Shown here in pieces: positions 21,172-52,777 of a DNA stretch of 64,000 nucleotides. The translations under genes were made by a program, and so were the position numbers. The DNA comes from Bugula neritina (taxonomy: Eukaryota > Animalia > Bryozoa): the NCBI GenBank assembly GCA_964035545.1, contig OZ037765.1, positions 10,364,698 through 10,428,697 on the forward strand, in the 5' to 3' direction. Below the pieces are notes generated by a model. That model saw only the letters and a list, made by a program, of their open reading frames with translations. It had not been told where the DNA came from and searched no databases. Every line of letters starts with the position of its first letter. The stretch's first letter is position 1.

Positions 21172-21254
21172 GCAGGGCTGTCCAACAGGCAGCCACAGGG
21201 CCATGAAAAGATGCCATCTCAGTGGCCCTCACTCGGAAAAGGTTGATACCCCTG
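21172..21254. mobile_element. Miniature hAT-like MITE
   Basis: Imperfect TIRs CAGGGCTGTCCAAC ... GTTGATACCCCTG with GGCCC-like subterminal motifs. Confidence 0.65.
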
Positions 21255-21534
21255 ACCTAAGTCATTAGAAAGGCACATGAGTTCAAGGACTACAGCTTAT
21301 ACATATCATTGCATGGTTATTCAGCTAAATACTAAACAAGTGTCAAAGTGTCTGAAGTGTCCTTCACCTTCCAGTTCATCCTGAAGCAAGCTCAGACATT
21401 CTGTCATACTTTGGCTTCTTGGCTTGATGAGTTGCCTTTCTTGGCAGCCTAAAACATAATAAACCACGCACTCAAAACTCATGATATGTGAATGTCCAGC
21501 TATTTGCTACAAATTTTTTTAACTAAAGAGAAGA

Positions 21535-21740
21535 GGAGCAGCCATGGTCTAGGGGTTGGAGCACTGATAGGAAATACAAAGTCGGTGGTTCAAGCCTCAG
21601 TAAAGGTCATTGGTGATACTAGAAAGGGCATTCAGCTTCTTCAACATAATAGAAAATAAGTCTTTAGCTAGCTCAAACGAACTCGACTCCATTAGGGGTT
21701 CTCACCGGGATGGTGAGTATATAAATTCGAGTGGTGATTT
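21535..21740 (+). mobile_element. SINE family A copy (diverged)
   Basis: GGAGCAGCCATGGTCTAGGGGTTGGAGC...GGTTCAAGCC...AAAGGTCATTGGTGAT...GGGCATTCAG. Confidence 0.8.
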
Positions 21741-22149
21741 GACTAGATAAAAGGAGTAGTTACTTTTCAAACAGCTATAACTTCATAATAATTATAAAAA
21801 GGCTGTGATAAAATATTCCTGCAATATGCAAACACTGGTGCTGCGGTTTTGAAAGGCTTTAGCCATAACAAAAGTTCAAACACATTTCACAAAATTAACC
21901 CAAAAATTAAATGGAATTTTGCCAGTTGCATTTTGAATGATTTTTGAAATCGAAGTACAATAACTTACCATTCTCTGCTCACCACTGATTATTAAACTAG
22001 CCGGAAAATTTGCCAAGAGAAACTTGCGCTCCCTTCACCATGTAATGCTGCAGTAAATGATGTTATTTACTCACTTTAAGGCTAAAGTGTTTCCAACATT
22101 TGATTATAAATATCGCAAGATATTCTCCTGTGTATTTGAGCCTCAGTAG

Positions 22150-25533: not shown

Positions 25534-27033
25534 TTGCAGCCTATCAAGCTTTATAAAACACTTGGATTATTTAATAGATGGGTTTCAAAAATATATTATC
25601 AAGTACAATTGATAACTTCATTAGAAAATTAAGAGAAAACTAGTGAGGTCCCCTCAAGTTGAACTTGCCTATGAAACTAATGCTCTACTTCGTGGCATAT
25701 AATCTATGTTTTATAGTCTATATCTTTCACATACACATTATAGAATATTACATATCCACATCATGCTCAAAGGTAAATAGTAGGCTTCAGCTGATTATTT
25801 GGCTCCAAGGTATAAAACCTGCATAGACCAAGTGTAAAATGAACTACAAACAAATATAACACTGATATCACGGCCTTGAACTTTGAACAGGCTGAATTTA
25901 GAACTTTTACCATGCAGTCATAAACGTTACCCTGAACGGATATCACAGATAAACAGCATTGCATGGCAATATAATAACTGAGCGTGCAGTGAAAGTTGTT
26001 GCTAAAAAAATTTTTCTACAGTGAACCTATTAGTTGCTCAGAATATCCTGGTATGCAAAACTGATTATATAATTGCTATTTAAATGATATAATATAAGTT
26101 AACCATTAAGATCTAGAGATTTAACACTTCAACATAATATTGTAAAAGGTCAAGCTCATCTTCCCAAAAATATTTAAACTGGTGATATATATTGGCCAAT
26201 CAAACTAAACTATTTCCCACTATTTGTATTATACATCAGTTTTAGTCATTTTCTGTTAGTTATACTCAACGCCTTTTATGCGTCAAGAAAACATGTTGAC
26301 ATATGGTATATTCAACAGGGGTGAGAAATCTTTTAACCAAGTCAGTTTCTATATATAGTACTTATTTTTTAAAAATTGCTATTCCTGATTTTAAGCCAGT
26401 ACTATATTACTAATATACTAGTTCACTATTGTATAGGGATTTATTTGCATATACTGTTGTATATACTAGTCATACATTCACTCACTACATTGCATAGCCC
26501 GGACTAAATGTTGACACAAAGCATTTATAAAGAAGATAACAATGTAGCCGGCAAAGAAGTGGAGCATTTTTTCTAGCCAGACCTATATAATGACCTTTCA
26601 TAGATATGGAAGCAAGTCATTGGTGCGCATCTAATCTGTCCTCGTGATATCTAGTCATATCGGACTGACGAGGAAGATTATATTATTTCAACTGTAATCT
26701 CGCTCATTGACAAGTTGTAGCTGTAACTAAGGCTACTAAATGTTGCGTGAAAAGTGAGGCTAATGACAACCCACCCTTTACCTCTTTGATATAGCCTAAG
26801 TAGTTTATTCAAGCTAGACCTCATTGAACTGCCTAGTCTTCATTGTATACAGCTAGTACGATAGTCTAGTTGATATAAATAGTTGCAAGGAGTTAGTCTA
26901 CACTTTTTATTGTGGTCAGCTGTATTCGTTACTCAAGTAACTCTCATGTGATTTAGTAGTCCCTGAGCTGTAGAAATCAAATACAATCGAACTACTTACA
27001 GTCTCACTGTACCACTTGTAGTAGGATTTGAAT

Positions 27034-30000
27034 ATGGCAGTCTTAGAAGATATGTGGGAAAATACTGGAACCACTGCATTAACTGTTGTATTGGGCTTGA
27101 TTACTTGTTTGTATCTCTTCTGGCCAAAGATATTGGAGAAAAGAAAATATCCACCCGGACCAATTCCTTTACCTTTTATTGGAAACAGTTATGCTAGATT
27201 CAGCAGTGCTAGATCCCGGTACAAATATGGTAAGTTTAGCTATTAATCTTAATCACCGCTTTAACATTGAAAGAAAATATGTGTACTTTGCAGATTAAAG
27301 AAACAGTTCTTTCTAAAAAAAGACGTGTGTAGTTTGGGTGGTTTTTGAAAAGCTGAAATAGATTGTAGCATTTCTTATGCGCATACTTGCAGCTTGTAAG
27401 GGTGCTTTCCTGTGAAATCATATAAATACAACATTATTTTCCTTCTAATAGGAAGGGGCTATTGAAGGTATAATAAATGATAATAAAAGTATGAGGATGT
27501 GGAAAGTTAATGTAGAGCATAAGCAAGATCTGTGCTAAACATATAAAATGTAGAGTTAAGCAGGCTACAACTATAGTTTATATTTATCTTCTATAATTTT
27601 CATTCATTGTTTACATTTAGGGTAATGAAAAGTGTCCTTATACTGCATTTCTATTGTGCCATATTGAAAAATGTGAGAAAAAGCATTTTTTGCAAAAATT
27701 CCACAATAGCTGTATAGTATATAAAGTGGATAATATTGTAGTGCATTGACATTAATCAATGTATCGTGTAACTTTAATTACCGATTGAATACTATTAAAA
27801 GTTGTCTTCCACAGTTGAACGCCTTAAGATTCACTTATTTCAAAAATGTACAATTAAATAAAATATTACATCATATACTTGATAATTGAGTGGGAACACA
27901 TTTTGAAGATTCGACATTAAAGATTTCATCAACACAACTTTGTGAAGACAACTCTCAGCTTAGACCACTATTTATAGTTTACTTCCGATCTAAAACTCTG
28001 CTTGATGGAGTTGTCATCCTACAACATTATAAGCAGTTTAAGGACAATGTAACATTCATGGGGTATGAAAATTCACGTGAAAATAATAGCAATTAGCAAT
28101 TATTTTTAGCTTGTATTAATTTTTTGTCAGCTTTAATTGTTCTGAGAAAATCCTATTTTAGATTCGAATTCTTAGAAATCTCTAGAACTTACCTTAATTA
28201 TTGGGATAGGAATCGTAGAGTTATCCCCTTACCTCGAACACCTGTTGTGATATTGCTATGGAGTACCAAAAGATATACATGGAATGCTTTGCTTACTTCA
28301 GCAACATGATATATAGTTGCACGTTTGTACTGAAAATGTCAAATACTAGCAATATCCACAACACAAAACTGAAAAATAGAAATAAAAAATTGCTGTCATT
28401 TCAGCAGCCACCTAATATCTTTGGTATTTCCAATGCTGACTCACCACTATCTATTACTCATGCCAAAGTTATGCCATTTAGATGCAATAACAAGGGGGAG
28501 GGGGATAGTAATTGCTTACTTTCTTTAATCTTCTTAATCAATTTTGTATGGGGGTTGCTGTGAAATACTTCTAACTAGAACATAACTTATCTTGCTATAT
28601 TTCTCATTTACAACAGTGGATTTTCTCAATTTCTTTACCTTCATTATGCAGTCTGATGAAAATTACTTCAGATTAAGAAGATGACTCCATGGTAAGAGCT
28701 TGGCACAATATTACAGGTTATATATGTATTATTTGTAGATAACTGGAAATCAAAATATGGAAATATAGTTTCATATGTGATGTTTGGACAGTGGACAGTA
28801 GAGCTGTTTGGTTATGATACTATCTATGAAGCCTTTGTTACCAATTGGGAGAATTTCTCATCCAGAAGTACCGTCCTCGCCAGAAAACCAGCAGGTAAAT
28901 CGTTTTATTTTTAATAGTAAAATTACTTTTGTTTGTCGAAAATGCAAGTTATGTCAGAAGTCCTGCTGTATTTTTTGGAAAAGCTAAGAATGTGTTTTTA
29001 TATATTATAATGTTTATAACATTGTTAAAGGATGTGGGTGTGGCACAGTTGCTATTATATTGGCATCACCAAGAACCTTGTTGGCCTTCAGTCCGTGATA
29101 GAGGGCCAGATGTGCCCCGCCTAAAACATTACTTTAATGATTAAACCATGTCTGCTCCTTTGTAGTAACGAACTGTTGTACTGAGTATAATATAATAGTT
29201 TGGCAGAGGAAAATGTAGAGCTCACAACCTCTACAATTGTTATATATTTTGCACACAGGCTTGATATTTGGAGATAATTGGAAAGAACTGAGAAGACAAG
29301 CCTTAATAACCCTCAAGGATCATGGGATGGGAAAATCAGGAATTGAGGACAAAATTGTGGAAGAAACTGGTATGTTTTACACTATAGCCAATAGATAATA
29401 CTGACATAATTCGTGGATGATTATGCATGTTTCACTAATTAAAATTCATCTCTTTTAGAATATTTGCTTCAAAGACTTTCGAGTCTGCAGGGAGTGCAAG
29501 ACAGTCAGGCTTTTAAACTCATAATGAGTGGTGCGGTTTCAAATGTTATAAACCAAACTATCTTTGGCCGTAGACTTGATTATGATAATCCAAACTTAGA
29601 GGGAATTCAACAGTTTGAAGGATTCATTACAGCTGCTGCTAGATCGATGGTCTTACCTTTTTATCAGGTAAGTATATAGAACATGATACATGGCTTGCAG
29701 TATTGTAGTTTATAAACTGTTTTGCCAATTGTCTTACAACTTAACTAACAAATCTTCAAAGCCTTATTGACTATGGGTAACCCGCAGAAGCAATTCAACT
29801 AATTGAGAACCAAGCTTTTGCTGCTCCTATCACTATTTTTACTAACTTTACTATAAGTAATTTACCCCAAAAATTGTGCTCTTTATATAGTATTGGCCAT
29901 GGGACCCTCTAAATCTGAAGCAACTCAGTAAGTATTTTGAAACAGCTCAAACTTTCTTCAAATCAGAAATTGAGCAGCACAAGAAATCTTTAGATATCAA

Positions 30001-33000
30001 TGAACCAAGAGATTATATTGACTCTTTCCTTGCTGAAGGAATCAAAACTGGAAATTCTGTCTTTCAAAATGAGGGTAAGTTTTAGCCATCAAGCTAATTT
30101 TTGTGTACATGTTGTGATAACACAACAAAAAATGTAATAGCATATGTTATTGTACAAAGTTTGAGATGTTTACCCTGCAGAATGCCTTATACACTATGTT
30201 CCCATTGCTTTTTATTATACGAATGGATTTTTCATTTGTTTGTGAACAGGCCAGTTTAATGAAATTACAATCACAAGTTAAAGTAAACCACAACTGTACA
30301 GATCCATTCGAAGCAATAGGAACACAGTGATAGTAAGGGCAAATTGCAAGATGAACTTCTTAAAATTATTTTTTATTAGAACAGAGTCATAAATTTACAG
30401 CTGAGAGTAGATCTGTGCACAGTTAGCTGTGTACCTAATACGTGTCCTATGTATGTTTTCAGGAGACCTTCAGAGTTCTATCAGTCAACTGTATTTGGCT
30501 GGACACGATACCAGCAGCACTACTTTGACATGGGCTTTCTTGTTTCTAGTCAACTATCCTAAATCTCAAGATATTATATATGAAGAAATCCAAAAGACTG
30601 TTGGTGAGTTGAAGCACACATGTATTTTAATAACTTATAGCAAGACAATATAATACTTTAACTGTTGAGTGAAAAAGCAAATTAAATGATTATAATGGAG
30701 ATATGTGTTATGGTCGACTAACATGATTATTACGTTTAAAGGATTGCTCTATCTTGTCTAATAAATGGCCATTTAGGTCAAACACACACAATATTGTGTT
30801 TTTCTAAGCATGCATTGACAAAAAGCATTTGACCAAAGGTAGAAAAAGTTAGTTGAAGTTGAGGGTGTAGATTGGTAACAGCCAAAACGCCGATTTTGAA
30901 ATGAGCTGGGAACTGTGACGTAACAGCGCCAGCATTCCTGCTGGTCACGTGACTATACAAATGAATTACTATAGAAATATGACTGTGAGATGTGATCTTT
31001 CAGCTCGTAATTTGTATATTTATAGAAGTGCAAATGTGAATTCTCTTAATCTATAGCTTTTTGACATTTTAAATAACATGTATGTAATAACATTAGGCTA
31101 TATTTTGCTTGTAACCATTAGAAAAAAGCATTGCAAAAGCATGCATTCTTTAGGATGAATGCCTGCAATCGATCTAAACTAGGTCAGATTGTGCAATATT
31201 ACGGGCGCACCAAAGTTGACCTATATAGCGCACTGTAACTGCTTGAGCGTTATTGGTTGATATTGTGCTCAGCAACCTTGAATACTAGCGTTATAGTTAG
31301 CACGTGCAGCATAGTTACTGGCGTTCACACGTCACGTATTAGGCTATTCTTTTTCATGGCTGAAAATTTTACCGCCCTCAAAATTGGAATTTTGAAAAGC
31401 TGTTTTCTAGGCACATATCCCTTTGCAAAGTCACAATTGTTTGCATACACATTAAATTATAGTTCATAATTATAATGTGATTGTAATAAACTAAGATTGA
31501 GCAATCCTTTAAGCCTCACAAGAGCTATTTTTAAATTACTTGAAAGATAATTTATTAATTGCTAGTCATTCTGCTAAGCTGTCTTGGTTTCATTTTTATG
31601 TAACACTGAGTTTTTCATTATTTTTAAACTTTGACGGATGGCAGGATTTTTCATAGTAGTATTGCATTTGCAATACTCCTACTGCAGGTATATAATATAT
31701 AAATCTATATTCTGATATTTAAGAAAAATGTAAACTTGTATATTAAAAACCAATGCAGGTAGTCGATCAGTGAGTTGGAAAGATAGAGAAGAAATGCACT
31801 ATACTCAAGGGTTTATACATGAAGTGTTGAGATGTGGTGGAATCGCTGGAAATACTTTGCCACACAAGTGTACAGCTGACACTGTGATTGGTGGACATCT
31901 TATTCCAGAGGGTAGGGTGTTAGCTGTATCTTGATCTATGCAACAACATTGTATGTCTTATAGGATGAGCAGGCGGTTATATGACCAATTTGTTATCTTG
32001 GCAGCAATGCACACTTGCTGCCGACATGCTGTCTTCTCACAGAATCCCCTGTCTAGTTTAATTAATATTTGTTGTGCAGTTTTGTTTCCTATGTTTTAAG
32101 ATACATTTTTACAGTCCCTAAAATTTTATCCTGCAGTATAAAGTTTGAACATTAGTTAGAAAGTTGACATTATTTAATATTTAGTTTCTAATGATGTAAA
32201 AATGCTATGTAATATAAGACGTTTAAATATTTAAAATTGTCTTTAAACCATGTTATAAATTTTGTTTAAAATTTACCGGATTTCTCTCTAAATTTTTTAC
32301 AAATTACACATTGCATGGATTTTATCAAGATGGCAATTTTGTAAATGGTAAAATGAATTTAAACTCTTCCAGGTTAATTTTTCCATTTTGAAAATTAGGC
32401 CAGGGTAGTTTTTTCGTAAACATAAACACTTAGTGAATACATGAGAAAATAAGATTAAAATGCCAAGCAAGCAAGAAAACACTAATAAAGCTTCACGTTA
32501 TTTCAAAGTTTGGCTATTACTGCTACTTTCATCTATATCAGTAAAATAATATCACAATGAAATAATATATCCAATTCAAATTTATACCACATACTTTAAA
32601 AACATCTGCCATTATACTCAGTGGTCAAAGACTAATGTATAACAGATAACTCATGGTGACACAACTCTAACTTATGAGGAGAATCTAATTATCACCATCA
32701 AAGTTAAGACCATGGTGGATATTTTTATTGGAGTACAGTGTTTGAATATTGTTTTTAAATAATAGTTGATATATGTTAGAAACTATTATCAAATAATTTT
32801 GTTATGCTGTAGGTTCAATAGTGCTTGGTAACCTCTACAGTACATTCCATGATGAAAGTGTGTTTCCAGATTCCTATTCCTTTAAACCAGAAAGATATTT
32901 AAATGAAGAAGGAAAGTTTGTTAAACCAACAGGAAAACAGATGTTACCATTTAGCATTGGTAAAAGAGGGTGTTTAGGGGAGGGTTTAGCTCGTACCGAA

Positions 33001-33138
33001 ATATTTATGTTCCTTGTAAGCATTGTGCAGCACTTCCAGGCTAAGAGTGTGGGAGACAATAAGGCAGCTGAAGAAGGTGTTGATATATTCACACATTCGC
33101 CTAAACCTTTCAAGTTTACACTTGAAAGTAGAGAATAA
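27034..33138 (+). CDS. Cytochrome P450, CYP2-clan (copy B), ~491 aa; exons 27034-27229, 28739-28894, 29259-29369, 29459-29667, 29891-30074, 30463-30603, 31759-31911, 32813-33138
   Basis: Same exon structure and motifs as copy A (AGHDTSS, EVLR, PERY, FSIGKRGCLGE). All introns are GT-AG; TATAAATA at ~26874. Confidence 0.95.
30740..31508. mobile_element. Kolobok-like non-autonomous DNA transposon in CYP B intron 6
   Basis: TTAA on both sides (30736-30739, 31509-31512); TIR AGGATTGCTC(T/A)ATCTT. Confidence 0.8.
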
Positions 33139-34395
33139 AGAGTAAAATAATAGCTGGCATATGTTTTCTTTACATCATAGAGTTCATCTTCTAAATACTA
33201 TAAATTCAACAAATAATTCTTGGAACTTCTGGAGTTCTCAGGATTTGTGATATTCTGATGACTAGTTTCACAGAGTTATTGATCAAACAATACTCTAAAA
33301 TAATATTGATTCTAAATTCAAAAAAGCTTTAATTTCAAATGCATGCTTATATATGTGTATATTATAATACAGTGTCTGAAATTCCCAGACTTTTCTCTTT
33401 TATATTTATTCCTCAAGTACCCACCAACCTCCCTTCATGAAGATAAGTATAATATAAAATGCAATAAAATGAAATAAGCCAAAATGTGGTGACCCATCAA
33501 CAAAAGAAAAATATAAAACCAACTTATATTATGCTCCCTCACATGGCAACCAAAATTATGCAATTAAAAGTATTGCATCACATGAGGAGATTTTGACTAA
33601 TATTACAATTGACCACCATCCTGTAGCAGTTTTATCGGTCTGCCAAGGACCCAGCAAGCTTATTTAGATGACTGAACTTAACTGATGTCTTAATGGGACA
33701 GGTGAAAGTTGGTATTAATGTAGCTTATTCTAGTTCACCAACTTTACATATCACTAACACTTCAACTCATAAACCAACACCGTGAAGTCTGTAATAAGAG
33801 AAAAATTAGGGTAAGCATTATAATTTTAATACAGTATGATTGAGTAATATGTTTAATGTGAAATATAATATAATATGTAATATAATGTATATAATATAAT
33901 ATAATATGTATATATTATGAAACATAGCAAAGACAAAATGTATTAAAGGCTATTAACTCAGCATATAACATAATTACAGTTAATTACAAAACAAATTACA
34001 AGAGATTACAAAACAATTAATAGAAAAAGATAAAAGAGTATAGCGAAACTCATATTCTTCTTTAACTTGCCTTAGACTGGCTTCTGAATAGTGAATAAAG
34101 TGTAATAATACAGTTATTTCAAACTTATGCATGAATATCATGCGAGCACATCATATTTTAATGGCTAAAAACACTTTACTGACCAGGATTCAGTTTTCTT
34201 GACCAAGCAGGACCACAGTGGGATAATACAGAATAATGTGCACTGTTCCCATTGGCCACCCGAACTACCCCAAATTGGCCCCAACAGGTTCCCAGCTTGT
34301 ACAAACAAACTGCAATTGCCTTGAATAACTGTAGGAATGCTAATGGGGAAAATGTAAACATGAGCTGTAAAGTAACTACGAAACTGTTAGAACCC

Positions 34396-37345: not shown

Positions 37346-38525
37346 ATACACTATACATGTTCACACATGGATGTGCATGAGAGCTCAGTCTCCTACTCTC
37401 CATGAAATCAAGGAACCTAGCTGTTTAAAAACACCCACAAAAATACTAAAACCTGAGACATAAAAATAATTTAATTTTATTTGGTAAATTTCAATGGGCT
37501 TTTGTAAATGACCATAGAAAAGTATATTTGTGAATAGCAAGATTTTATATATAGAAGTATTTTTATTACTTTTATACAACATTCAAGCATAATATCTTTA
37601 TGTAAAATGGTGATTAGATTAATGTGACTCTGACTATAAATATATTATACTATGACTGTATTACTATGATGAGTTACTCTAACTCTATTATTGTGACAAT
37701 CTTTGAGGTACTAAACTTTGTAACTTGAAGTTGTGTTTTCCAGTAAGTAGCTAGCTCACGGATAATCAACTGCCTTTTACTTCGCCCCCAACACTGATTG
37801 GAAAGACACTAGATACCAGACAAAACTTTTTAAGCATAATATTGTGTAAATGCTTAGTGCATGACACTCTATATTTTAAAAACTTTTTTATTGTTGACTT
37901 TTAATTTTAATAACCATTAAAATAGCATAATATATATTTAATGACCAATTAAGTACAAAGCAGCAAGTGAACTTAAATACTAAAACTGTACTACTACTAC
38001 TGAAATCTGAATACAAAATTATGAGTTACAAAAGTGGTCTTTTCAGAACACTTATTTAAAAACCTACTAAAAATTAAATAAAGAGCATAAAATGAGATGC
38101 ATAAGTAGCTATTAATGAGTAAGTCAACAACATTCTACAGTTTACATAGGCACTCTTTGGTAAATTTGATGGCACTAACACTACTATGTGATGATAATGT
38201 CAGGCAGCCAAAAAATAAATGAGAATATAGTTAAAACCAAAATTTTGTTTTAAAATTCAAAACTATACACATGATAAAACTTTTACAAATCTAACAAAGT
38301 TGTAAAAGCCAAAATAGGTTTAAATTATACTTATCATAAAGTTACATGCAATAGTTGCCTACCAACTAAAATGTACATAAAAATTATGCATATTAGCAAG
38401 AAAAAAAGCTATGTACAATAAAAATATTACGTATTCACAAACGCTGTATCCAGATTGTTAAGTACAAGTTTATACATGAGTTCAAAAAGTAAAATGCATA
38501 TACAATCGACAGAGTACTGTGTGCT

Positions 38526-41500
38526 TTACATAAAAGGTGAGTTTGAAGGGGCGCCCATGTACCCAGGTGGCTGGTGCGCCATCGCAACAGGTTGCTGGAT
38601 AGATTGCATTCTAGCGCCCATTGGGTGGCCAGGAGGGGCCGGACCAGGAGGATAATCAACTGGAGGTAGGGCGTATGATGGCATACCAGCCGGAGGTGGT
38701 GTGGCACTCGGGTGCTGATAGCCTGGAGGTACTGCATAGCCACTCGGTCTCATAGCTGCATGTGAGGGGTGGCCCGGGTGACCTGGATACCCTGGTGCCG
38801 ACATCATGACATGCTGACTCCTCATGTGCATACGAGAATCCATTGCACCTGAAGTTCACACAGACACATTCATGCATAGGCAGCTCAATATGATAGTCCA
38901 GAATATGCATAACAGCTACAATTATAATCAGTAGCTGAGAAAACACGCCAAACTGTAAAGAAAACTGCTACTGGTACCACCAAAACCTTGTCGCTCTAAT
39001 GCTCATCAAAAAATTTCTAAGTATGCTGGCATCAGTGAGTTGGGCAATGTATATTGAGTTTGCCAGAGACTAGCTAAACGAGCTGATCTACATATAGCAT
39101 AGCAGATTGCTGTCCTGCTAATACACTGGTGATATGGTATGATAGTAGGTGGGTAGCTAACATATCGTTGTAAACATTAGATGATGCAGTGAAAGGCAAG
39201 CAGCTAGCAGTATAAGTGACAGGCATACCTGGATGAACACCAGGTGTAGGTGCTGGATTATAGCCCATGCTCATACTAGACTGATGAGACGACATCATAT
39301 AAGAAGGGGCAGCACCTCTGGGTATACTTTCGGACATGTGCATGCCAGTCATTGGTCCAGCAGCAACAGAAGGCATCATATGAGAAGCACCTAGCAATGC
39401 ACATTAACATATAGTAACCCTAGCAACCGTCTAATGCACAGCAGCGCAAGCACAGTAACAGTAGCCTATACTTGACAACACCAGACAAGCACACATGAGC
39501 ATAAGCTACAAACCTGGTGGAGGCACATGCCTGCCGTACATAGACCCTGGCGGTCGGTGAGGCACGGGGCCAGACATCATCATACTGTGGCCTCCTTCGC
39601 TTGGCAAATAGCCAGGATTGGCAGGAGGGAATCTTTCAGCTGCTAGGAAATCATAGTTGGGTTTGGCTGGTAATACTGGATCATGAGAAGGAGGTATGGA
39701 GGGCTGTGTTACAGGCAGGTAAGATATGGTGCTACTTCCTTTGTTCTGTATGCTAACGGCGGGTGCTGTGGGTGCAGGCCCAGGCGGTGCAGCTGCTGGC
39801 GGGGCTGGAGCAGGCTGCGGAGGTTTGTACATAGGATCCGGCTGGGGCCCCGGGGGTGGCATCCCACTACTAAAATTGTTCATTGATACGTCAACATGTT
39901 GCTGCATGTGAGGAGGCACTCCAGAGCCCTGGTAGCTCTGATCAGCCGTAACATTCTGAATGTTGAGCTGCCCAATAGACATGTGTGCGTTCACGAATGT
40001 GTTGTTTACACTATGGTGTGATGAGTGCGGGGGTGGGTGCTGGCCGCCTGCCGTCGAGGATGGTGGTGGGCCATTCCTAGGCTGCTCTGAACTATTAGGG
40101 TCCGGGTGAGGGGCTGCCCTATGCAGTTCTCCATAAGGACCGTTTTGTGCTATTTTTTGTGACATTTGCTCCATTCCCTTGGCTATGTTGGCTAGAGATG
40201 CGGACGTGATGTTAGATAAGCCACCGTCCCTGCTGTCGATATTCGACTGAGATGAGGGCATGTTGGCATACATGGGCTGCTGTAAGTCAGCATTACCAGG
40301 CATGGCAGCGGCAGAGGAGTTGGGCTGATGAGCCGCGTTCAACTGTTTTTCTATGGCTCGTTCCTGGTTCTCTGGTTGCATATACATGTGTCTCTGAGAC
40401 GGAGGTACAGTCATACTCTCTGCACTCTGCCCCCTCCTCAAGGAGCTGTTGTAGCTAGGAGGTCCCCCCATGGCTGGAGTTCCCTGAAACACCAACTTTC
40501 AGGCTTAGTTATAAAAAACACGTATCATATCACAAGACACTTGAGATCTACCAGGAAATACATAATGTCGACATAGTCTCATTATTCAACAGCTAGATTT
40601 AAAGTCAAGTGTTTTACATAAATTTCACAATTCAAACTTATAGCAATCATTGGATATATTAAGCATACTTACTTGGTATGGAGTAGGTTGACCAGCTTGC
40701 ATCATCCTATAAGGAGGACCTGAAGTTTTAGGAGGTAAGAGGTTAGGCATACTATGCTGTCGGGAGACGGAATGCTGCATAGCACCTTTTACTGGACCAG
40801 ATACCCCGACATCCTCTGGTTTAACAGCCTGTGGGTTGGTTGGATTTGGTGTGTGTGGTTGAGAGGCCAGAGGAGATGGAGGTATGGCGGGCTTCTCCAT
40901 CTTAATAGGTGGGTGATCAAGAGGTGGTGTCTGTGCGGGCGAGGCAGCGGCGCTAGACTTTCTTTTTCTGCCAGCCTTTTTAGGAACAGCGGAAACTGGC
41001 TGTGAAGGAGCATTAGTAGGTGGCACAGGGTAAGGGGGCGGTGGCTTCGACTCCATCATACAAGGATGCATGTGCGGTGGCATGGATGGCATCCCAGGAC
41101 TGTACATTGGCATTGGTGCGGCTGAAGGCGGAGGTTGCTGGTTCATACCGTAGCCACCGGGATTGTACTGAGGTGCCTGGCTGCAGGGTGGTAAGTACGG
41201 TGGCTGCTGATCCTGGGCCATGTTGATATGACTGAAGTCTGATTCTCCCATACCTCCATCAGCAAACAGCATTTGCTGAATTCGCTTCAAGCTGGCTAGG
41301 CTGTTCTCTCTATGCTGCCTCTGACTCGGGGTGAGTCTCTCGTCTGGCACAGACTGGTGTGAGATGTTCGGAGTCATTGAGTTCTTCATATCATGGCCCA
41401 TGTACATTGCTCCCCGGCCGTAGGCTTGCCGAGGTAAATGCTGGTTGCTGTAGGGTGATTTCATATCATTCCACATTAGAGGTGCTGAGCTGCTTGGGGG

Positions 41501-43719
41501 GGCGTGGTGGGCTCTCGGATGACGGTGAGGATTGCTGACTTTTGGCGGCATCATTGGATCTCTTGACTGGGAGGTAGGCAACATAGGCTTAGTATGGTTA
41601 ACCTGCACCACAAAATAACACATGACCACTTGTGTGAAGGTAATTTACCTAACATTAAAAATACCCAATCAATAAAACATTTCATTCTAAAATAGACTGT
41701 AAGTCAACAACCAATAATAACTGCAGCAGAACAACAGAGGGAATAGTTGAGGCTCAACAAAAAATAGCAGTACTGGAACGCTGTACTGTACTGCTGCATA
41801 AAGTCAAAGCTGTGCAACAGTTTAATTCTTACCACATGAGTACCTTGGTTTAAGATGGAGTAGGGTTGAAATAACACATTCCAATGTGGACTAAAAGACC
41901 CTGTGTACACAATATAACATGCTAAATTATTCAGTTTAGTCATGAGTTTCCACTGGCTACTGTGATAACAGAAACAGTGTGATAAAATATAAATACCTGT
42001 AAGAACTGTTTAGTCTCAGGATCATCGAGATGAAAGTGAAATATTGAGGGGTGGGCTCTAGATGCCACCGAATCTACGGCTCTATTGGCCATTTGAGAAG
42101 AAAATATATACAGTTGGTTCTGTGTCTGAGAATAAGTCAGTGATACTGATTTTTTTGCCTCTCCTAGAAACAGAGCAAGGTTTCCATTTATATATATAAA
42201 AAAAAGGAAACCATTAAAATAAAAATATCTTAGAATCTTGTTGTTTCAAATAGCAGCATAACCAAGAGCTCTCATGTTCTAAATTCAAACAACATGCAGT
42301 TACATAATTCCAAAATATTCACAAATCTGCCATAATCAAGTCCTGCAAAAGGCCAGAAATTACATTCCATATAACTGGTGTACATATATCACAGTACATA
42401 TCAGTGTTTCACCCACAACAAGCAAAATATATTTCAACTGCAAAATGAATCAATCATATGTATGAGGTGAGGTAACGTGATAGGTCTTCCCCCACACCCT
42501 TCCGCTACAACCTTGCAGTGAATATATGGACAAAAACAGGCAAGTTATGCATTTTGACAACTACCATCCAGCTTACTTCACTAAACTCAAAACATGTTAT
42601 GGAACACTGGAGTAGTTGACGGTAAGAGTAGTGGTGATAGAAATGGTCACAGTCACAGTAGTAGTACCAGTAGCACTAAAAGTATTAGTAGTCACAGTAG
42701 TGATAGAAGCAATAGTATTAAAGCAGTAGCAGTAATTACAATAATGATATAGACAGTAGCAATAGTCACAGTAGTATTAGTATTAGTACAAATACTAGTA
42801 GTCCTACCTACTTCTACTAGTACTACTGCTACTTCTACTAGTAATACTGCTACTTCTACTAGTACTACTGCTGCTACTACTACTACTTCTACTAGTACTA
42901 CTGCTGGTTCTACTAGTACTGCTGCTGCTACTACTACTACTAGTAGTAGCAGCAGTGGTCACAGCCTTAATAGTAATAGAAGTAGTCACAGCAGTGATAG
43001 TAGTAGTGATTATATTAATGGAAGTACTAAAACTAGTCGCTAATGAAGAGCTATATATATTATGCATTTACTTCATGCATCAGAGCGTCACATTTCTCCC
43101 TTCTCCATCTCTCTTACCACTGTCACATTCAGCTCAATCTCATGATAAATTGATAATAAATTACCATAAATTATTAAAATATTCTGTACTTACTGAACTC
43201 ACCATTGATTTGAGCCGAGCTATTTTTTCCTAAAAATAAAAGAGTTTGATATTATTATTATTCCGAAATAGTAATACTAATGGGATTACTACCACACCCC
43301 AAAGACCAGGTCAGTTCTCGGAACATGCATCTGATGATATTGATAAATAATTATCAATAAAAATTCATAATTTATAAAAGAGATACAAATAAATATAAAT
43401 TATTAAACTATATAAAGGTAATAATTTCCACCAGGGCTGTGTCAATACTTTAATTTTCATTACCAAATAAATATGGGGGAAAGAAACAACCGCAGAAATT
43501 ATAGCAAGCAGCCATTTCATCACCTGTGTATGGCTCTTCACTGAGAACTTTTAACAGCTCCGGGTTTTCTGACTTGATGAGCTCCGATTGGTCAGCAGTT
43601 GGGGTGGGCGGGGCCTCGCTTGTAGCTGGCGTCTGCGCAGATCTGTTGCCTTCCATTTCCCAAGCTTCGGCAGCGAGCAAATCTTTGTTGGTTATGACTG
43701 CGGGCTCAGGGGGCTGCGT
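38526..43719 (-). CDS. BCL9: BCL9/Legless homologue moiety; exons 43719-43524, 42163-41997, 41602-40673, 40483-39514, 39390-39229, 38848-38526
   Basis: HD1 (Pygopus-binding) LYIFSSQMANRAVDSVASRAHPSIFHFH and HD2 (beta-catenin-binding) PDERLTPSQRQHRENSLASLKRIQQMLF. The rest is P/M/G/Q-rich and disordered. All phases are compatible. Confidence 0.9.
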
Positions 43720-46700
43720 CTACAAGGTACACAGTCTAGTCTTGAGGTAACAAGCACCAGTTGTGGGGAGGAATTGCTTATTAGCAAGAATTAATATTAT
43801 AAACTTTGGGCTAATCTGCAATTTATGTTTTTAATCCACCAACTAATGTGTGGCCAAGATATTCTCAGCTTTTAGAATAGTAGAGTATTACTATACAACA
43901 GAGAGTAACTGTATAACGCAGTGTAGCTGTATGTATAACAGAGTGGAGATGTATAACACAGTGTAGCTGTATAACACAGTGTAGCTGCATAACATAGTGT
44001 AGCTGTATAACAGAGTGTAGCTGTATAACACAGTGTAGCTGTATAACACAGTGTAACTGTATAACACAGTGTAGCTGCATAACATAGTGTAGCTGTATAA
44101 CACAGTGTAGCTGCATGACACAGTGTAGCTGTATAACACAATGTAACTGTATCACTGCACCTCTAGCAATGGTTTAATAGCTGGGTAGAGTTGATTGCTG
44201 AGATAGGCATGCAGATCTTGTTCCTGGTCATCAGTTGACTGACTGAAGTTTCCAATAACTTCTTCCCAAGTAGAGCAGCTAGTAGCCAGACACTGCCAGT
44301 CACCACTACCTTTAGACTGTCCACTTTTCTGTCGGTAAAGTCTCAAATCTGTAATCACAAACGGACTCACTCAACAATACAATCAGATAACTCATCACCA
44401 TCATAATATGTGTATGTACACTATAGTATGAGTATGTGCACCATAGTATGAGTACGTACACTACAGTAAGAGTATGTACACTACAGTATGAGTATGTACA
44501 CTACAGTAAGAGTATGTACACTACAGTAAGAGTATGTACACTGTAGTATGTGTATGTACATCATAGTAGGAGTATGTACATCATAGTATGAGTATGTACA
44601 CTATAGTATGTGTATGTGCATCACCTGTAACAAAACTTGACTGGTAAATGCTTTTTTCCATACTATAGAAATTAAAGTGTATTAGCTACTAGTTGCCAGT
44701 GAAACTATGGATCCCAACAGTACAACTAACACAACTAAAACTATCACTGATACTGCTGATATTACTACTTATGTCACTGATATTACTACTAGTAATACTA
44801 CAAATAATACTGCTACTACAAACAATAATACCAGCCTACTGGGGTCACTGTTTCACAACTACTATTTTCATTATTACTAGTACTACTAGTACTACAGCAG
44901 ACACTACGATTACTAACAGTTTTGGCAGTAACATTTGCTAGAACAGTAGTGAGAAGAGTTGAAGTGGTATTACCACCAACAGCATAGTTTCTGCAGCTGC
45001 AACTATATGATGCACAACGTCATTGGCAAGTCTTATAGTACATATGCCTTCTTGTAATGTGAATGCAGTAGTACTCATTGTAAACTTATCTTGTCTATCG
45101 CAGAAGTGACTTCCTCAAAGATTGATCAAGGTATTACATTGCATAAAAAGTAAATTGTAAAGCAGCTTTTTTTAACTAAGTATAAAATTGCATCAAAATA
45201 ATAACAAGTCAATTTGCTATAGGAACCTAATGTCAGCCTGTATTAGAAGAAGAATTAAGGCTAGAATTTCACAACTTTCACTATTGCATACTTTACAAGA
45301 TTGGGTGTTATTTGATGACCTTAAACATTGGCCTTGGGGAGAATATCAACAATATTTACAATTCCAAAAATAATGACAATAATTTCTTCTATAGCTTTGT
45401 TGCTTGTGGGACCAATTGCTAATATAACATTTAAATAAAGTTTGTGGGTTTATGTTAACGCAGTCTTTACGTTGATTGAACATAAACTTGTGGAAAATTT
45501 CCCCTCTGATATGTTTTATATCTATGTATGTATTTGGTATAGCATAGAGTTCTAGCTATTGCCTGTCTACATTTCAGAATACTTTGCTGGATTGCATAAT
45601 CTTGAATACCTAATATTACACCACAAGCTGCCTGTTATTACAGCTACACATTATAACTGTTTCAAAACAATTCAGGTTCTAACTGGTAAGTCTTGCAGAA
45701 GAATAATATAGTAATCAGTTTCAAATAAACAGGAAAAAAAGAAAAAAAATTCATTTTCCATTGCAACTACAACTGTAAAAAAAACTTCCGATTGACAGCT
45801 CCTTCAGTTCTTGGCGTGAGGAGTTGAATAAAAAGTAGAAAACTTACCACCAGATACAGTGTATTACTGCCATGTGTGGCTCAGTCTCACAAATTGAGCA
45901 GAAGTAAAGAGAAATGGTAGTTATTACAAGAGTTTATTCCTCAGCTGTCATCATCGAGCTAGGTTAAAAATGCTATTTGTCATATTAGCAATCGAAAACA
46001 TCACACTTGGCAAGTGTAAGTGGTTAGAATGAATGAGTGAACTACCCAGCCGAAGAAGTGTGCTAGCTATGACGGGTGTAAAGGCTATAGGTTAAAATTC
46101 TCAGTGCCGTAATGATGAGGCAAAGTGGTTAGAAGCTGTCACGATAGCTAACCTCATTAATCACAGCCTAGTTAGTCTTATTGATAGAATATGAAGTAGA
46201 AAATATTACAGCTAGTGTAAATAATTTGGTTGTCTTTTTATGTTAATCACAATCAATTAGCCATTAAATTTATAGCAGCACGAGCTTATATTTATATTAA
46301 CCAAACAAGCATGCATAAAGTTGCTTCTATTAAACTAAATTTCTTCAAAAGATCTTCCAAAACTATCGGAGTTGTTTACTAGTTTTAAAGGTTTCTACAC
46401 TTTTTAAAGAATTTCCAAACTAATGAAATTATTTATCTGAAAAGGAAGTACCTATATAAAACAACTCTTCAAGCTTGCTTTTTAAAACCAGGTGAAGTAT
46501 TAAAGAAATTACAATAGTCTAAGCTCTTTCATCGGTTTTATAAAGCATTTTTAAAATTCCCATGAAAACAACTTGCTTGCCATATTGTTTATATCCACTA
46601 TTGCCACTATGCCTTAGGTGTTGTCAAACTTATTATTTGCTGCTTCTTACATTTGAACATAAAACTGATTCACAGAGACTAAAAATGCACTTTTTTAGCC

Positions 46701-49700
46701 AGCTATATCAACGATCCATAAGAATATTTTGCAAAATATTCAATAACTTAGATTTAGGACTTCTGCATGATATAGAATTACCACTCAGGTGGTAGGCTAG
46801 GAACGCACAACTGTCTAACTGTCCAGCTTTCTGCTGAACAGTTAGACAGTCTCAAACTCACTGTATACAAAGCTAAAAGGTAAAGTAATTAAGCAAACCT
46901 CAAAACAATCCATCAAGAATATAGTCATTACAAGTGACAAGTTATGTGGGCTACGTATTTATGAGGAAAACAGAGGTTCACCAGGTCAAGTTAAAACAAC
47001 AAAGTTTTGAGTTGACATAAGTTCATGAGACGCAATGAGAGGGGAGGGCATGATTTCAGAAATAATTCATTTCCTTTATTGTTTGACTTTTATATGATTG
47101 GAAAGTTCATTTTAATATAATTGAATTCTAGAAAAATAACAAATTAAACCTATTTTTGAGAGGCCAATAGGCAACCAGTAGCAATAACTCCAACTATAGT
47201 AGGGTAACTTAAAAAGACTTTCCTTAGTGAATTAGCATTTTTAGTAGATAACCCTGCTATGAAAATGTTCTTGCTATCCCAAAAATTTAAAAGAGGTCAC
47301 TTATATTTAAATGCTAAAACTTAGTGTAACAGGGGAGGGGGCTTGATAAGTTCCACACATCACTTATTAATTTTCTTCTAGTCCCTTTTTATACATCTCA
47401 TTGACTTTCACTATCTACCAACTTTAGTTTGCTCTGTGGTACTTAAATTTGAAATTGCTTCCTTTTCTAGTACTTATAAATGGTTAGATAATAGTTTATT
47501 TTAAGAGAAATATACAGAAATAAGTACACCCAGCTAAAAGTTTATTATTCTCAACTATCTACAAACCTGCTGGTATAATTGCTCAAAGCTGCACTGTTGT
47601 ACTAACTTGGCAAAAATAAATAAAACTTGTGTAATTGTTCAACCAACTAAGCATAAATATAATAAAATAATCTTCATTATAAAATTTAAATTACTAAAGA
47701 AAAGTTTTAATTAATACAAGGTTTGGGCAAGTTAAATCAAAACATTTTAATTTCTCGGCATCAAATTTAGTTTATACCTGACAGTCAGAGCATAGCATAA
47801 AATCAGTTGTAGATGCACCACCTTAAAGAATCAAACCAACTTGGAATGATAACCCAGTTCAAGTCAAATTCACGAATTTGAGATTGGTTACACTCTATCT
47901 TAGAATGTTTAGCTAAACTCTGGGAGATGGGAGATGGCAATATATATAGTTATAAAATTTAAACTTTTAAATTTGAGCATAAAAAGATAAAATTTAGAAA
48001 GATTAGGTTAAAATTTAAAAGATGATTGTACATTTTTATAAGCTTAAATTTCAGGGCTGTAGCTAACCACAATAAACAGTAAACACTATTTATTATAATG
48101 GCATACTTTAATAAATGCAAATATATATACTAAATAAGTATTTAACAAGGAACTAAAATTGCCATTGTTCTCTTTCACTACAACTTTTTTTATATTGTGT
48201 TAGTAGAGGAGAAACTAATAAATAGGCTAGTCAGCTAGAAATGGCTGTAGAAAAACATTCACCTACATTAAGAAAAACGTGTATTCAAGTTGTTGATTTT
48301 AAATGACATGGGAAGTTGAAATGTAGAGGTAAGACAACTCTATTGCTTCAAATTTAAAATAGCTTCTAAGTGAGTGGTAATCATAATGATGAACAAAGTA
48401 AATACTCATATATTCTCAGACAAGTCATGCAGATTATCTGTGGTAGCAGACAGAACCGGAATATTCTATTGCAGTACATATTCACTGACTTTCCACGAAT
48501 CGATCCCAGATCGATCTCGCTGAGATCGTTCCATCAAAGATCGATATGAGAAGTAGGAAAATGTCTGCTTGCTAAAATGTTGTCTGCTAATAAAAGTGAT
48601 AACTTATTGTTGATTGCTAAGCAAAGTATTTAATAATTACGAGAGCCACTTTTTCAGATGCCAAAACTTTGACTTTCAGTACAATGATTAAGAAAACTCA
48701 ATTATAGAAAATTATAGACGGTAGAAGGTACGAAAAATGGGAGCATTTAAATTGAATTTAAGTGACTAGTAAATCTTACTTTCATTAGTTATTTGCTGCG
48801 TGATTTCAAGCCTAACAATCCCGCAAGTTTATGAATATTCTTCAAGACAGCTATTAATTTTATATAAGCTGTGAAGCTAAAAAATTAAGAGTAATTATCT
48901 TAAATTGGCCAAATTACTTTACTCTAAAAGCTTTGCTGCGTATAGTTTATAGCTGGTGTTAATTTCTAGACTGCAACAATTTTGTTCTCTAATTGCAGTA
49001 GCTTTAATCACTCAGATGAGTGAACTAATTATCTTTAAAAAATTTATTCACTCAAGAGGAGGCAACTACGCAAGATCGATCTGACATTGTTATGGAAAAC
49101 CTATCGATCTGAGCACAATTCTTAGATTGATCTCGGTGAGATCTATCCATGAAAAGCCAGTGATCGAATATGGCTTAGCTGTCCAATTAACAATACAAAC
49201 ACACTTTATTGCACTCTAATGTACCACATCTTGTTATTTTTAGCTGTTTACGTTGGGTGAAAAAGTGCTAAAATGTCCAGCTGAAATTCTATAGAGCAAT
49301 TTCCCTTAGTGTATCTATATGGCTGCTTGCAAGTTGACTTTACAACAACCAATTACTTATATTTATTAATAGTTCAGCAGTGCAGCACAAACCAATTTTA
49401 ATGATTTTAAGAACTCTAATTTTAAAGAATGACCTGTTTCCAAGCTGCAAAATGCAGAACGACAGTTTTTTCAAAGGAATTGATTTCGATTTTTCTTGAT
49501 GCAACTGTTTCCAAACATCAATAAAAAATCCATTCTTGGCAAAGTAGTGATACGCACAACTTGTAGTAACTATTTGTTATTTCACTTATATATTTACTGT
49601 TGTGCATATAATATGTCTGTTTACATAAACAGGCAAGCATGTTAATTATTGGTTATTCTTATTTTCAGACCCCACTGGTGCAATCTGGTTGAATCAAAAT

Positions 49701-52700
49701 ACATTTATAAATAAACAATAATCAACAACTTGTGCAGGTGCTTTGCTATTAGCATAAACTTAGCAATGAATTGCTATATTTCTAGTTTCATAAATAGTTA
49801 GTATTTCTTATTTATTTCCTAAATTTCTATTTAGACCAACCAATATTTAAATCTTGTGAAAGTTTGTGATTGCTTTGCTACTGCTTGTTGAACAATAAAC
49901 TTGAGCTAAAGATTAACCCAGAATGAGTATAACTAAGACTACAATTAGAAATACACTATTCCTGAAAAGATAAATGACTACATTGACATAACTTTCTTAT
50001 TTTTCAAATTGTACTAGTCTAATAAGAAACATTTCTACTTACCATCAAAGTACCAGTATGTTCTATTTTCTGAGTCTTGTCCAACATTTATAATTGTCTA
50101 AAATAAAACAGATTTACAGCTGTAACTATGCGTGGTGAGATACAGTCAAGAGACTCATATACTACAGGTCTCAGGTACCAAATCATCTTATAGTGTAGTG
50201 TAGTATAGCGATAGCAATACTTTATAGGATATAGAATCTAGAGTCCAGACTAATGCTTCTTTTGTGAAAAGTAACCCCATCTATTCCCCAAAACTAACTC
50301 AAATTGTTGCACGATATATAAAAATAGATTGGACAACTTCAAATTATGAAAGACAAGGTTTGCATGAATGAATTATTGACTTTTACGTAATTATCCCCCA
50401 GCCAAATAATTACAAATATGCACATATAATATTACTAGGACTCCTAGTAGTATTATATGACATATAATATTACTAGGACTCCTAGTAATATTATATGACA
50501 TAATATTACTAGGACTGCATTAGGAGAACAGACATGGAATATATAATTTTATAACTGGTTAGAGTTGAACCTACAGGATCCAGTTGGCTGTCTCCACCAA
50601 ACTCCTCATTCAGCATCTCATCTATGTCATTCTTCTTCTCTTTTGTTTGGTCAGCCAACCATTTTAGTATTCTTAGCTAAATGAGAAATAATCCCATTAC
50701 AGGTTGCATAACCACCATAAGGTCAACTAATGCACCCAAATGCGAATATCTTAATTTCAATGAAGATGTGTACACAAAAGATTAAAATTTAGGGGTGTAA
50801 AAACATTTTAGTGCAATGAAAGATGATTCCCACACTTTAGATAAAGAAAATATACTTAAATCAACATTACAATTACATTATGCTATGGCCTAAAGCCAAA
50901 CACAGCACAACTATGGTAGATTTGGTGGGGGACGGATCATTATTCCGAAGGCCCATTGCTCCGAAGGTTCATTAGTCCAAAAATATTTGCCCAGTACAAG
51001 TTGTTATGCAAATTACATCATAATATATTATTACGATAGAAGTAAAATAGCTTTTAAAATTGATGCTATTGCACAGCTTTTTTTATAATTAGACTCTACT
51101 ACGAATGTTAATTTATAAATAAAGCTTTCTTCGCCATCTTTGCATGCATATATATACTGAGCTTAATGCAATTTGGAATTTATGCTCTACCGCAATGCAA
51201 AAAACAAAAGCTCTAAAGTAGAAATAAAGCATTAGCAAATAATTGTTCAAGTAAGAACATTATACGTTTCTTTTTTGACCAATTACAATACAATACATAT
51301 AGGCTTACAAAACAAAAGCAATAAGAGTTTTATATTTTAATAAACAATCACATTAGGAGCGATGGACCTTCGGACTAATGGGTCTCCGGAATATTGACTA
51401 GTCACCGATTTAGTGACACTCCAGATGTGGCTGGCAAGTTATGATGATAGCAGTCTGCTTGAGATAGTCTCGTCAGCAGAGCAAGAGAATCTCCAGATAT
51501 TAAATGTGATGTTAATAAACTATCTCATTAAACAACTGGCAGGTCAGCAGCTTCATTCATACATTTTTATACAAGAACGTTTAGACTGGAGGAAAAACTC
51601 ATCTATTAAAGTAGCATGTTGCCTAAAGATAAAATGTTACTAACAAGGTCAAGGTAAAAAGTGCCATAAGGAATTATTTCTAAAAATAGATTTTAGTACC
51701 CTATCAGGCCCGGTGACTGAGATGAAATCTTGTTTGACAAGTTGAGAGATTTCTGATTTGTTTTCTTCTGTGTAAGATCTTAAATGCTTTTCACAGTTAT
51801 CAATCCTACAACATATAAAATGCCCAAGTAGCTGCATAAAAACTATAGTAGTGACTAGATTGGATAGGGAAATTGAACTTGCATATGTTTTTATTACAAC
51901 ATGACATGCAAAAAGATATAGCCCCATGGATTATAAAATTCTAATTTCCAATTGCTTTCAACAGCAGCTTTGTGCAACCTTGAAAAGTTGACCATCATTA
52001 TATTTTTAAAATAAATTTATGTCCCATAGATTGGTCACGAGAATTTTTACAAACTGCAAATTGATGTTCAAATATTGTGCTTCTGAAACTGCACACAGCG
52101 TTTTTGCTCTCATTCAATAAGTTAAAAGTATAAAATACAAACCAAATAGATATCAAAAACTATTGATTGAGCCATGTAGCGAATCACTTAATGTTATTAC
52201 ACTTACCTAATTTCAGTATTATTTTTGATGTGGCGCAAAAGACGGCTCACAATGTCTTGGAAGAGCTTTGACTTCCCATCACATATGCAAATTTCAAAAC
52301 TCTAAAACAACCAAAATAACTGAAATAAAACTCTTCTGGTTATATGCAATACACAAACAACATCAAGAATAGCATATAAGTCACTTCCAATGAATAATGT
52401 ATTAACAGATGTCTTGTAGCTTTTGAGTTCCAACATGCAGTAGGGAAATGCAGATACAGAGTCTTCAAATGTTCACAGGGAAAACACTAAGACATGGAGC
52501 AGTTCAAATACCCTTATTTCAACGTTGGGAAACTTCATCAAGGCCCGTTTGTTGTTAACAAAATGTGCCACATAAGGCAGCTCATGCATGTGTCTCACAT
52601 CTTCCATCTAAAATAAATAAATGAATATAGAAATAAATAAAATATACATACTCATTTATTTATTTATACATTATATATCAAAAGACATATACAACGGGTA

Positions 52701-52777
52701 AAATCAATTTGAATTATTCTTTTCAAAACACGGGCATGGTACATGTAACATAATACTCATATTTTAAAACTTACCAT
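38526..52777 (-). CDS. Predicted single fused ORF, DDT-WHIM-WSD::BCL9, ~1130 aa, 13 coding exons
   Basis: Phase-0 donor GAG|gtgcag at 44161 matches phase-0 acceptor ccttgtag|ACG at 43719, giving ...IKPLLE|TQPPEP... and one uninterrupted 3393-nt frame. Confidence 0.65.
42600..43040. repeat. (AGT/ACT)n-rich low-complexity intronic tract
   Basis: Degenerate trinucleotide repeats that switch strand polarity at ~42800 and ~42940. Confidence 0.85.
43908..44151. repeat. Minisatellite, 18-bp unit (gtgtagctgtataacaca), ~13 copies
   Basis: Directly visible; source of the repetitive ORFs at 43865-44155. Confidence 0.95.
44161..52777 (-). CDS. CECR2/RSF1-like DDT-WHIM1-WSD (ISWI-interacting) module, ~215 aa; exons 52777-52775, 52607-52512, 52301-52207, 51805-51700, 50676-50575, 50097-50043, 44348-44161
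   Basis: DDT-like ELPYVAHFVNNKRALMKFPNVEIRSFE...LFQDIVSRLL; WHIM1-like DFISVTGPDRLRILKWLAD; WSD-like VGQDSENRTYWYFDDLRLY; WHIM3-like WQCLATSCSTWEEVIGNF...EQDLHAYL. Phases are all compatible and no bromodomain follows. Confidence 0.85.
44408..44621. repeat. Minisatellite, 20-bp unit (agtatgtacactacagtaag), ~10 copies
   Basis: Directly visible. Confidence 0.95.
48483..49162. mobile_element. CACTA/CMC-like non-autonomous element
   Basis: Termini CACTG...CAGTG; TIR CACTG(A/G)CTTT(C/T)CA(C/T)G; multiple subterminal GATCGATCT repeats; near-TSD att/atc. Confidence 0.65.
50423..50516. repeat. Tandem array (2.5 copies) of a 38-bp palindromic unit
   Basis: catataatattactagga-c-tcctagtaatattatatg: 18-bp arms with a 1-nt loop. 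Confidence 0.9.
50928..51406. mobile_element. MULE-like MITE
   Basis: GG...CC ends; imperfect ~55-bp TIRs built of TCCGAAGG-CATT repeats; 9-bp near-TSD gatttggtg/gatttagtg. Confidence 0.7.

Follow-up and report, generated by a model that had tools for sequence, protein, structure and literature searches.

An N-terminal DDT-WHIM1-WSD module in BCL9/Legless of the bryozoan Bugula neritina and its possible role in linking ISWI to Wnt signalling

Introduction

The 64,000-nt stretch of the Bugula neritina genome analysed here (contig OZ037765.1, positions 10,364,698 to 10,428,697; referred to as the window) carries on its minus strand a gene in which a DDT-WHIM1-WSD module, as in the partner proteins of the chromatin remodeller ISWI, precedes the HD1 and HD2 elements of the Wnt adaptor BCL9/Legless in the same reading frame. 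This locus raises the question whether module and adaptor form one gene, how old their combination is and what it may do. Legless has been depicted as a largely unstructured protein with HD1 in an N-terminal position (PMC9285942), in which HD1 binds the PHD finger of Pygopus and HD2 binds beta-catenin (PMC4571689). The joint explanation that we regard as the best one, and as reasonably probable as a whole, is that an old module derived from CECR2 would make BCL9 an ISWI-tethering Wnt adaptor.

Gene structure and the junction between module and BCL9

The gene extends from an ATG at 52777 to a TAA at 38526 and comprises 14 exons separated by GT-AG introns, giving a single stop-free open reading frame (ORF) of 1139 aa. 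The module, which accounts for the first ~215 residues of Bugula BCL9, is joined in frame to HD1 and HD2. In the following list, exons are compared with a second Bugula BCL9 gene (the C2 paralogue), with BCL9 of the nemertean Tubulanus and with a CECR2-like Bugula gene, which are described further below.

52775..52777, minus strand: exon 1, coding part, consisting of the ATG only, with GTAAGT as the donor; the start is identical in GenBank model KAF6025130
52512..52607, minus strand: exon 2, first DDT helices; the paralogue counterpart likewise has 96 nt in phase 0
52207..52301, minus strand: exon 3, remainder of DDT; both flanking intron sites are common to the CECR2-like gene, and the nemertean exon also has 95 nt
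51700..51805, minus strand: exon 4, helices before WHIM1; 106 nt in the window, the paralogue and the nemertean
50575..50676, minus strand: exon 5, WHIM1 helix; supported by the orthologue alignment, the paralogue and the nemertean
50043..50097, minus strand: exon 6, WHIM2 with the motif GQD...YWYFD; 55 nt in the window, the paralogue and the nemertean
44161..44348, minus strand: exon 7, WSD/WHIM3 (a strand, a W-C-C strand and two helices)
43720..44160, minus strand: intron 7, the junction intron, 441 bp, phase 0, with a weak GTGCAG donor
43524..43719, minus strand: exon 8, linker; open for 21 codons ahead of the first Met
43203..43229, minus strand: exon 9, micro-exon of 27 nt, phase 1 to 1, present in GenBank KAF6025129; the C2 paralogue has a counterpart of 33 nt, the nemertean one of 78 nt
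41997..42163, minus strand: exon 10 with HD1, the Pygopus-PHD-binding element, at about 42122-42027
40673..41602, minus strand: exon 11 with HD2, the beta-catenin-binding helix, at 41335-41255; no HD3 was detected downstream
39514..40483, minus strand: exon 12, rich in Pro, Gln and Ser; its C-terminal blocks are also conserved in chelicerate BCL9 and the paralogue
39229..39390, minus strand: exon 13, low complexity
38526..38848, minus strand: exon 14, last coding exon, ending in TAA; the GenBank model concurs for the first five residues only

A sequence-only reading of the window had proposed one gene with a CECR2-like DDT-WHIM-WSD cassette joined in frame to BCL9, which is backed by the splicing of the GenBank model, by the paralogue and by the nemertean introns. 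Its phase-0 junction intron of 441 bp (44160-43720) and the open stretch of 21 codons that precedes the first Met in exon 8 are recovered in our spliced model. It had counted six exons on the BCL9 side, the micro-exon at 43229-43203 having been overlooked; there are seven, and the ORF, correctly predicted as a single one, has 1139 aa instead of ~1130 aa because of this addition. The intervening DNA, described as mostly minisatellite, fits that description in intron 7, where an 18-bp minisatellite (43897-44152) makes up ~58% of the length. The intron measures 441 bp in the window versus 963 bp in the GenBank assembly. Exon 7 is flanked by minisatellites on both sides, namely the 18-bp repeat at 43897-44152 and a 20-bp repeat at 44403-44617.

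The site and the phase of intron 7 are identical in the C2 paralogue, where the donor is GTAAGT, in the nemertean gene and in the GenBank model. Close matches to the window were found among the Bugula neritina proteins in the databases. The Bugula annotation in GenBank was produced with AUGUSTUS using transcriptome hints (PMC7576161), and its model KAF6025130 contains exons 1-7 as described here and the identical acceptor of exon 8, followed by a stop eight residues later. A run of five C in exon 8 (43713-43709) reads as four C in the GenBank assembly, resulting in a frameshift; an Illumina contig of a separate sample has T plus four C at this run and stays in frame across exon 8. Thus, the GenBank split into two loci (EB796_016560 and EB796_016559) is due to a 1-nt indel in exon 8.

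The second BCL9 gene lies on contig C2 (G000:C2:11363525-11389200, plus strand) and is predicted to encode a full DDT-WHIM-WSD module and HD2, its introns 6 and 7 having lengths of 7.7 and 8.0 kb. Colinear copies of exons 2-9 with identical phases precede the second HD2, exons 2-8 are equal or near-equal in length to those in the window, and the junction donor is the consensus GTAAGT. The two Bugula modules are 41% identical, so that the join of module and BCL9 is older than an old duplication.

In the RefSeq BCL9 gene of Tubulanus the introns match at eight successive sites from exon 3 through exon 10, the junction included, and the module exons have lengths of 95/106/99/55/191 nt (Bugula: 95/106/102/55/188 nt) with identical phases. 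The phase-0 junction intron is located seven codons past the same proline and is followed by a micro-exon and by an HD1 exon with the same end residue. Furthermore, transcript-like contigs of other animals from SRR15101703 and SRR3984610 encode module and HD1 with no introns, and the order of module and BCL9 part is the same in three assemblies, in the C2 paralogue and in other phyla. RNA-type runs from several studies contain 16-24% of the words of the region 38500-44400, which fits expressed exons and is silent on splicing. Taken together, the locus is very probably a single spliced gene.

Identity and predicted fold of the module

The identification of the module rests on its orthologues and on its predicted structure. 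In an exon-wise scan the Pfam families DDT, WHIM1 and WSD had no match in any single Bugula exon; the domain search suggested along with the sequence-only reading thus recovered HD2 of BCL9, and the three module domains emerged only through orthologues and structure. Among the twelve aligned orthologue rows Pfam DDT (PF02791) was matched in nine (best E 8.6e-6, mostly weak), the Bugula row alone remaining below the cut-off, and WHIM1 in eight, again mostly weakly. The divergent sequence P0008 passes the cut-off for DDT. WSD was recognised from its fold and its motif instead of a Pfam score, and the motif residues show little or no variation across the module alignment. The mostly subthreshold Pfam scores may also be the reason why automatic annotation displays the BCL9 domain only.

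The AlphaFold model of the module (mean predicted local distance difference test 79.6) combines an N-terminal half made of helices with a sheet of four strands and two helices that close the fold. In a comparison with 48,161 solved chains yeast Ioc3 of the ISW1a complex (2y9z chain B) was the sole match to the whole module, with 202 of 216 residues aligned over module residues 6-216, a Z of 9.8, which is middling by itself, a root-mean-square deviation of 4.5 and a sequence identity of 12%. Ioc3 differs in having large insertions and no Wnt-adaptor region. The structure neighbours of the module in the Atlas are DDT/WHIM1/WSD clusters (template modelling score 0.73-0.81), and an RSF1-like cluster occurs among the Atlas feature matches (0.88; a lead only). 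A search of PDB sequences with the module profile yielded nothing significant.

The Bugula protein shares the DDT-WHIM-WSD logic of the ISWI partners RSF1, BAZ1A/B, BAZ2 and BPTF, but has no PHD, bromo, WAC or MBD domain. CH domains (Hec1/Ndc80, augmin) align to residues 1-120, the DDT-WHIM1 half, with Z of 8-11; we did not accept this as homology, the match being limited to the N-terminal half. The module matches of P0003 and P0006 were discarded as false positives caused by repeat proteins.

The BCL9 part of the protein

HD2 matches the Pfam family BCL9 (PF11502) with 44.6 bits (cut-off 25, E 1.3e-11) and the PDB entries 2gl7 and 3sl9. HD1, which is positioned upstream of HD2, reaches 49 bits with a local profile of HD1 and has four weak PDB matches, all of them Legless/BCL9 HD1 chains (E 0.013-0.046), in agreement with the two elements named in the sequence-only reading. 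The order of HD1 and HD2 and the long, disordered C-terminus rich in Pro, Gln and Ser resemble vertebrate BCL9 and BCL9L and Drosophila Legless, from which Bugula BCL9 differs by its folded N-terminal module of 215 aa. A homologue search with exon 11 returned a Bugula ORF only.

The protein also differs from vertebrate and arthropod BCL9 in HD3, the ChiLS-binding helix with an invariant Trp and an F/Y doublet, which has been stated to occur in all BCL9 orthologues (PMC5352222): there is no Trp past residue 389 and no match to an arthropod HD3 profile, although this small profile is insensitive, chiton and nemertean BCL9 also scoring poorly. With the same reservation about small profiles HD3 was detected in neither Bugula paralogue, which we treat as a lead. 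We regard HD3 as an accessory element, the orthology to BCL9 being based on HD1, HD2 and the shared introns. In the C2 paralogue HD1 was not detected with a small profile (likewise a lead); if this is right, its protein would connect beta-catenin with the module and leave Pygopus out.

Relation to the CECR2-like gene

In this genome the module profile matched the BCL9 gene of the window, its C2 paralogue and a single further gene, and the other DDT/WSD loci gave no match. The further gene is a compact CECR2-like gene (G000:C2:4599300-4605600, minus strand) predicted to encode a DDT-WHIM-WSD module together with a charged coil and a bromodomain; the first exon of its DDT part was not found. Like CECR2/Dikar, the subunit of the CERF complex, Bugula BCL9 has a compact N-terminal DDT-WHIM1-WSD module, and two of its intron sites coincide exactly with those of the CECR2-like gene, a third being offset by two codons. 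The sequence identity between the BCL9 module and the CECR2-like module is 22-31%. Unlike CECR2/Dikar, the BCL9 protein has HD1 and HD2 in place of a bromodomain, which was absent from every exon of the gene that was scanned and sits in the separate gene on C2; the gene in the window was therefore not classed as CECR2.

The sequence-only reading had suggested that BCL9 replaced the reader half of a CECR2 gene and had recommended looking for a separate CECR2. Since an intact CECR2-like gene with a bromodomain was found elsewhere in the genome, on contig C2, the replacement does not hold, and the module most likely goes back to a duplicated CECR2-like gene, CECR2 itself not having been consumed.

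Distribution and age of the architecture

Exon 7 alone as a query retrieved chelicerate BCL9 proteins, and broader searches added others. According to local profiles, a single chain combines the module with HD1 and HD2 in a chiton, in a nemertean and, among arthropods, in horseshoe crabs, spiders, scorpions, a tick and two damselflies. In a sea spider module and HD1 were detected, a mayfly model includes the WSD part, and a centipede yielded only a fragment of the module. An animal contig of an unassigned species carries module, HD1 and HD2 in that order, and P0008 has module, HD1 and a remnant-like, HD2-like stretch below threshold; the parts of P0008 would fit a non-bilaterian origin of the module, without showing that origin. 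The survey retrieved no deuterostome and no identified non-bilaterian sequence, and a scan of Joint Genome Institute metagenomes with exon 7 gave nothing that was confirmed.

The module was absent from all retrieved neopteran BCL9 proteins (orthopteroids, bugs, beetles, hymenopterans, flies and a butterfly) and from BCL9 of a millipede. In a sawfly and in the millipede a scan of 10 kb upstream of the gene, as far as the adjacent genes, revealed no module exon, and the identical scan detects six module exons in the nemertean; both cases therefore represent real losses. In our reading the module was lost in neopteran insects and in a millipede. Human and other vertebrate BCL9 is not known to have a DDT module, published descriptions (PMC9285942) do not give it one either, and vertebrates probably lost it as well.

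The join is common to a nemertean, a mollusc, chelicerates and palaeopteran insects and is thus an old architecture, and the conservation in other genomes that the sequence-only reading had proposed to look for is found in the nemertean, the chiton, chelicerates and odonates. Because of the shared introns we infer that the module was joined to BCL9 once, presumably before the split of lophotrochozoans and arthropods. It is very probable that the module is ancestral in protostome BCL9.

Proposed function and alternative explanations

The gene encodes a BCL9/Legless orthologue with a predicted DDT-WHIM1-WSD unit of ~215 residues, which, according to the proposed mechanism, may bind the HAND-SANT-SLIDE region of ISWI in a manner similar to Ioc3, CECR2 and ACF1. 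BCL9 would then act as an accessory subunit of ISWI as well as a Wnt adaptor, HD1 holding Pygopus and HD2 capturing beta-catenin, and a nucleosome-sliding motor would thereby be tethered at TCF enhancers. Binding between SLIDE of ISWI and proteins with a DDT domain is documented for fungi, plants and humans (PMC11950633), and exons encoding ISWI SLIDE are present in this genome. By analogy with these families and from the predicted fold, it is likely that the module binds ISWI; recruitment of ISWI, as anticipated in the sequence-only reading, is retained as the likeliest function, and Pygopus may, as proposed there, act as the histone reader.

Several observations weigh against this interpretation. 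Across the family the Pfam scores of DDT and WHIM1 are mostly below the cut-off and WSD is barely matched, from which it follows that the surface of the module has diverged. Foldseek found no significant PDB match for the module, and over its N-terminal half the Z of the CH domains slightly exceeds that of Ioc3. In Fusarium the DDT domain alone failed to bind SLIDE (PMC11950633). Wnt signalling in flies runs without the module, which is therefore dispensable in some lineages. The module tree is largely unresolved and P0008 is unplaced in it. At the locus itself, the donor of exon 7 (GTGCAG) is weak, and the support for the junction of exons 7 and 8 comes from the gene model, the paralogue and the orthologues.

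The main rival to ISWI binding, which we consider unlikely without dismissing it, accepts the architecture as real and old and assumes that the module no longer binds ISWI, its role now being to bind DNA or nucleosomes or to scaffold a different partner. The low identity to the CECR2-like module, the weak Pfam scores, the weak matches of KIAA2026-type helical domains to the module and its loss on at least two occasions in arthropods would agree with such a change of partner. However, the three motifs are retained together across phyla at 29-47% identity, the whole Ioc3-like fold appears to be retained in the model, and in characterised families this combination of motifs is the ISWI-binding unit (PMC11950633).

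It is improbable that the long form is made while shorter ones predominate, namely a module-less BCL9 starting at Met 22 of exon 8, a protein consisting of the module alone and resulting from read-through of exon 7, or both. Read-through into intron 7 meets a stop after two codons, a feature that, like the weak donor, is found in three assemblies; a Centruroides isoform is annotated without the module, and the scorpion contig, one of the two intronless module-HD1 contigs, contains a stop-bearing insert of 15 nt ahead of the WSD exon. On the other hand, intron 7 is short and consists mostly of a minisatellite of variable length, the donors at the junction match the consensus in the paralogue and the nemertean, and short forms are compatible with the long form.

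Two neighbouring genes, annotated as EB796_016560 and EB796_016559, or an assembly error in the minisatellites, a case envisaged in the sequence-only reading, seem very improbable: the public annotation gives two loci, but the same annotation joins exon 7 to exon 8, its stop is due solely to a 1-nt deletion seen neither in the window nor in the Illumina contig, and the order is kept in three assemblies, the paralogue and other phyla. A recent fusion confined to bryozoans, with loss of the reader half from CECR2, has a negligible probability. The CECR2-like gene as nearest other relative of the module in the genome might point to it, but the intactness of this gene and an architecture and introns common to nemertean, mollusc and arthropods speak against it, and the nemertean introns refute it unless they arose independently.

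Other features of the window

A gene with leucine-rich repeats (annotated as LRR_9 in GenBank) starts at 54871 on the plus strand, head to head with the BCL9 gene and ~2.1 kb from its ATG. Two near-identical cytochrome P450 genes are arranged in tandem at 10080-14500 and 27025-33140 (both plus strand), the last exon of the first one matching Pfam p450, and between them, at about 17500-23900, ORFs of another gene are located. At 740-1912 (minus strand) an ORF of 390 aa encodes an endonuclease of the long interspersed nuclear element type (Pfam Exo_endo_phos), whose reverse-transcriptase part would extend past the start of the window. Cys-rich and hydrophobic exon-like ORFs at 4521-7700 (minus strand) perhaps belong to a membrane protein gene.

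Implications

In agreement with the sequence-only reading, no DDT or WHIM module in BCL9 was found described in the largely open-access literature searched, and mentions pairing BCL9 with CECR2 or with the other terms looked incidental, judged from titles and counts. Each of the parts is known; what appears to be undescribed is that they occur together, how old this architecture is and that neopteran insects lost it. The module-bearing BCL9 is a real and probably ancestral variant of BCL9.

The view of BCL9/Legless as an unstructured adaptor derives from flies and humans. If an ancestral ISWI-binding module is true, these two model lineages would be the exceptions, the activation of Wnt targets in most invertebrates would be wired directly to a remodeller, and BCL9 would represent a new class of ISWI subunit. 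In flies, NURF/ISWI has been linked to Armadillo output, and the loss of the module raises the question of what replaced the ISWI link afterwards. A direct test is possible in tractable animals such as the spider Parasteatoda, ticks and damselflies.

More tentatively, and with somewhat less than even probability, the BCL9 of early animals may have originated as an ISWI subunit resembling CECR2, within a so far unrecognised ISWI complex that would still work in most invertebrate phyla, the fly and vertebrate forms being independently truncated. If BCL9 began in this way, the ancestral Wnt enhanceosome would have contained a built-in sliding complex of ISWI, BCL9, Pygopus and beta-catenin.

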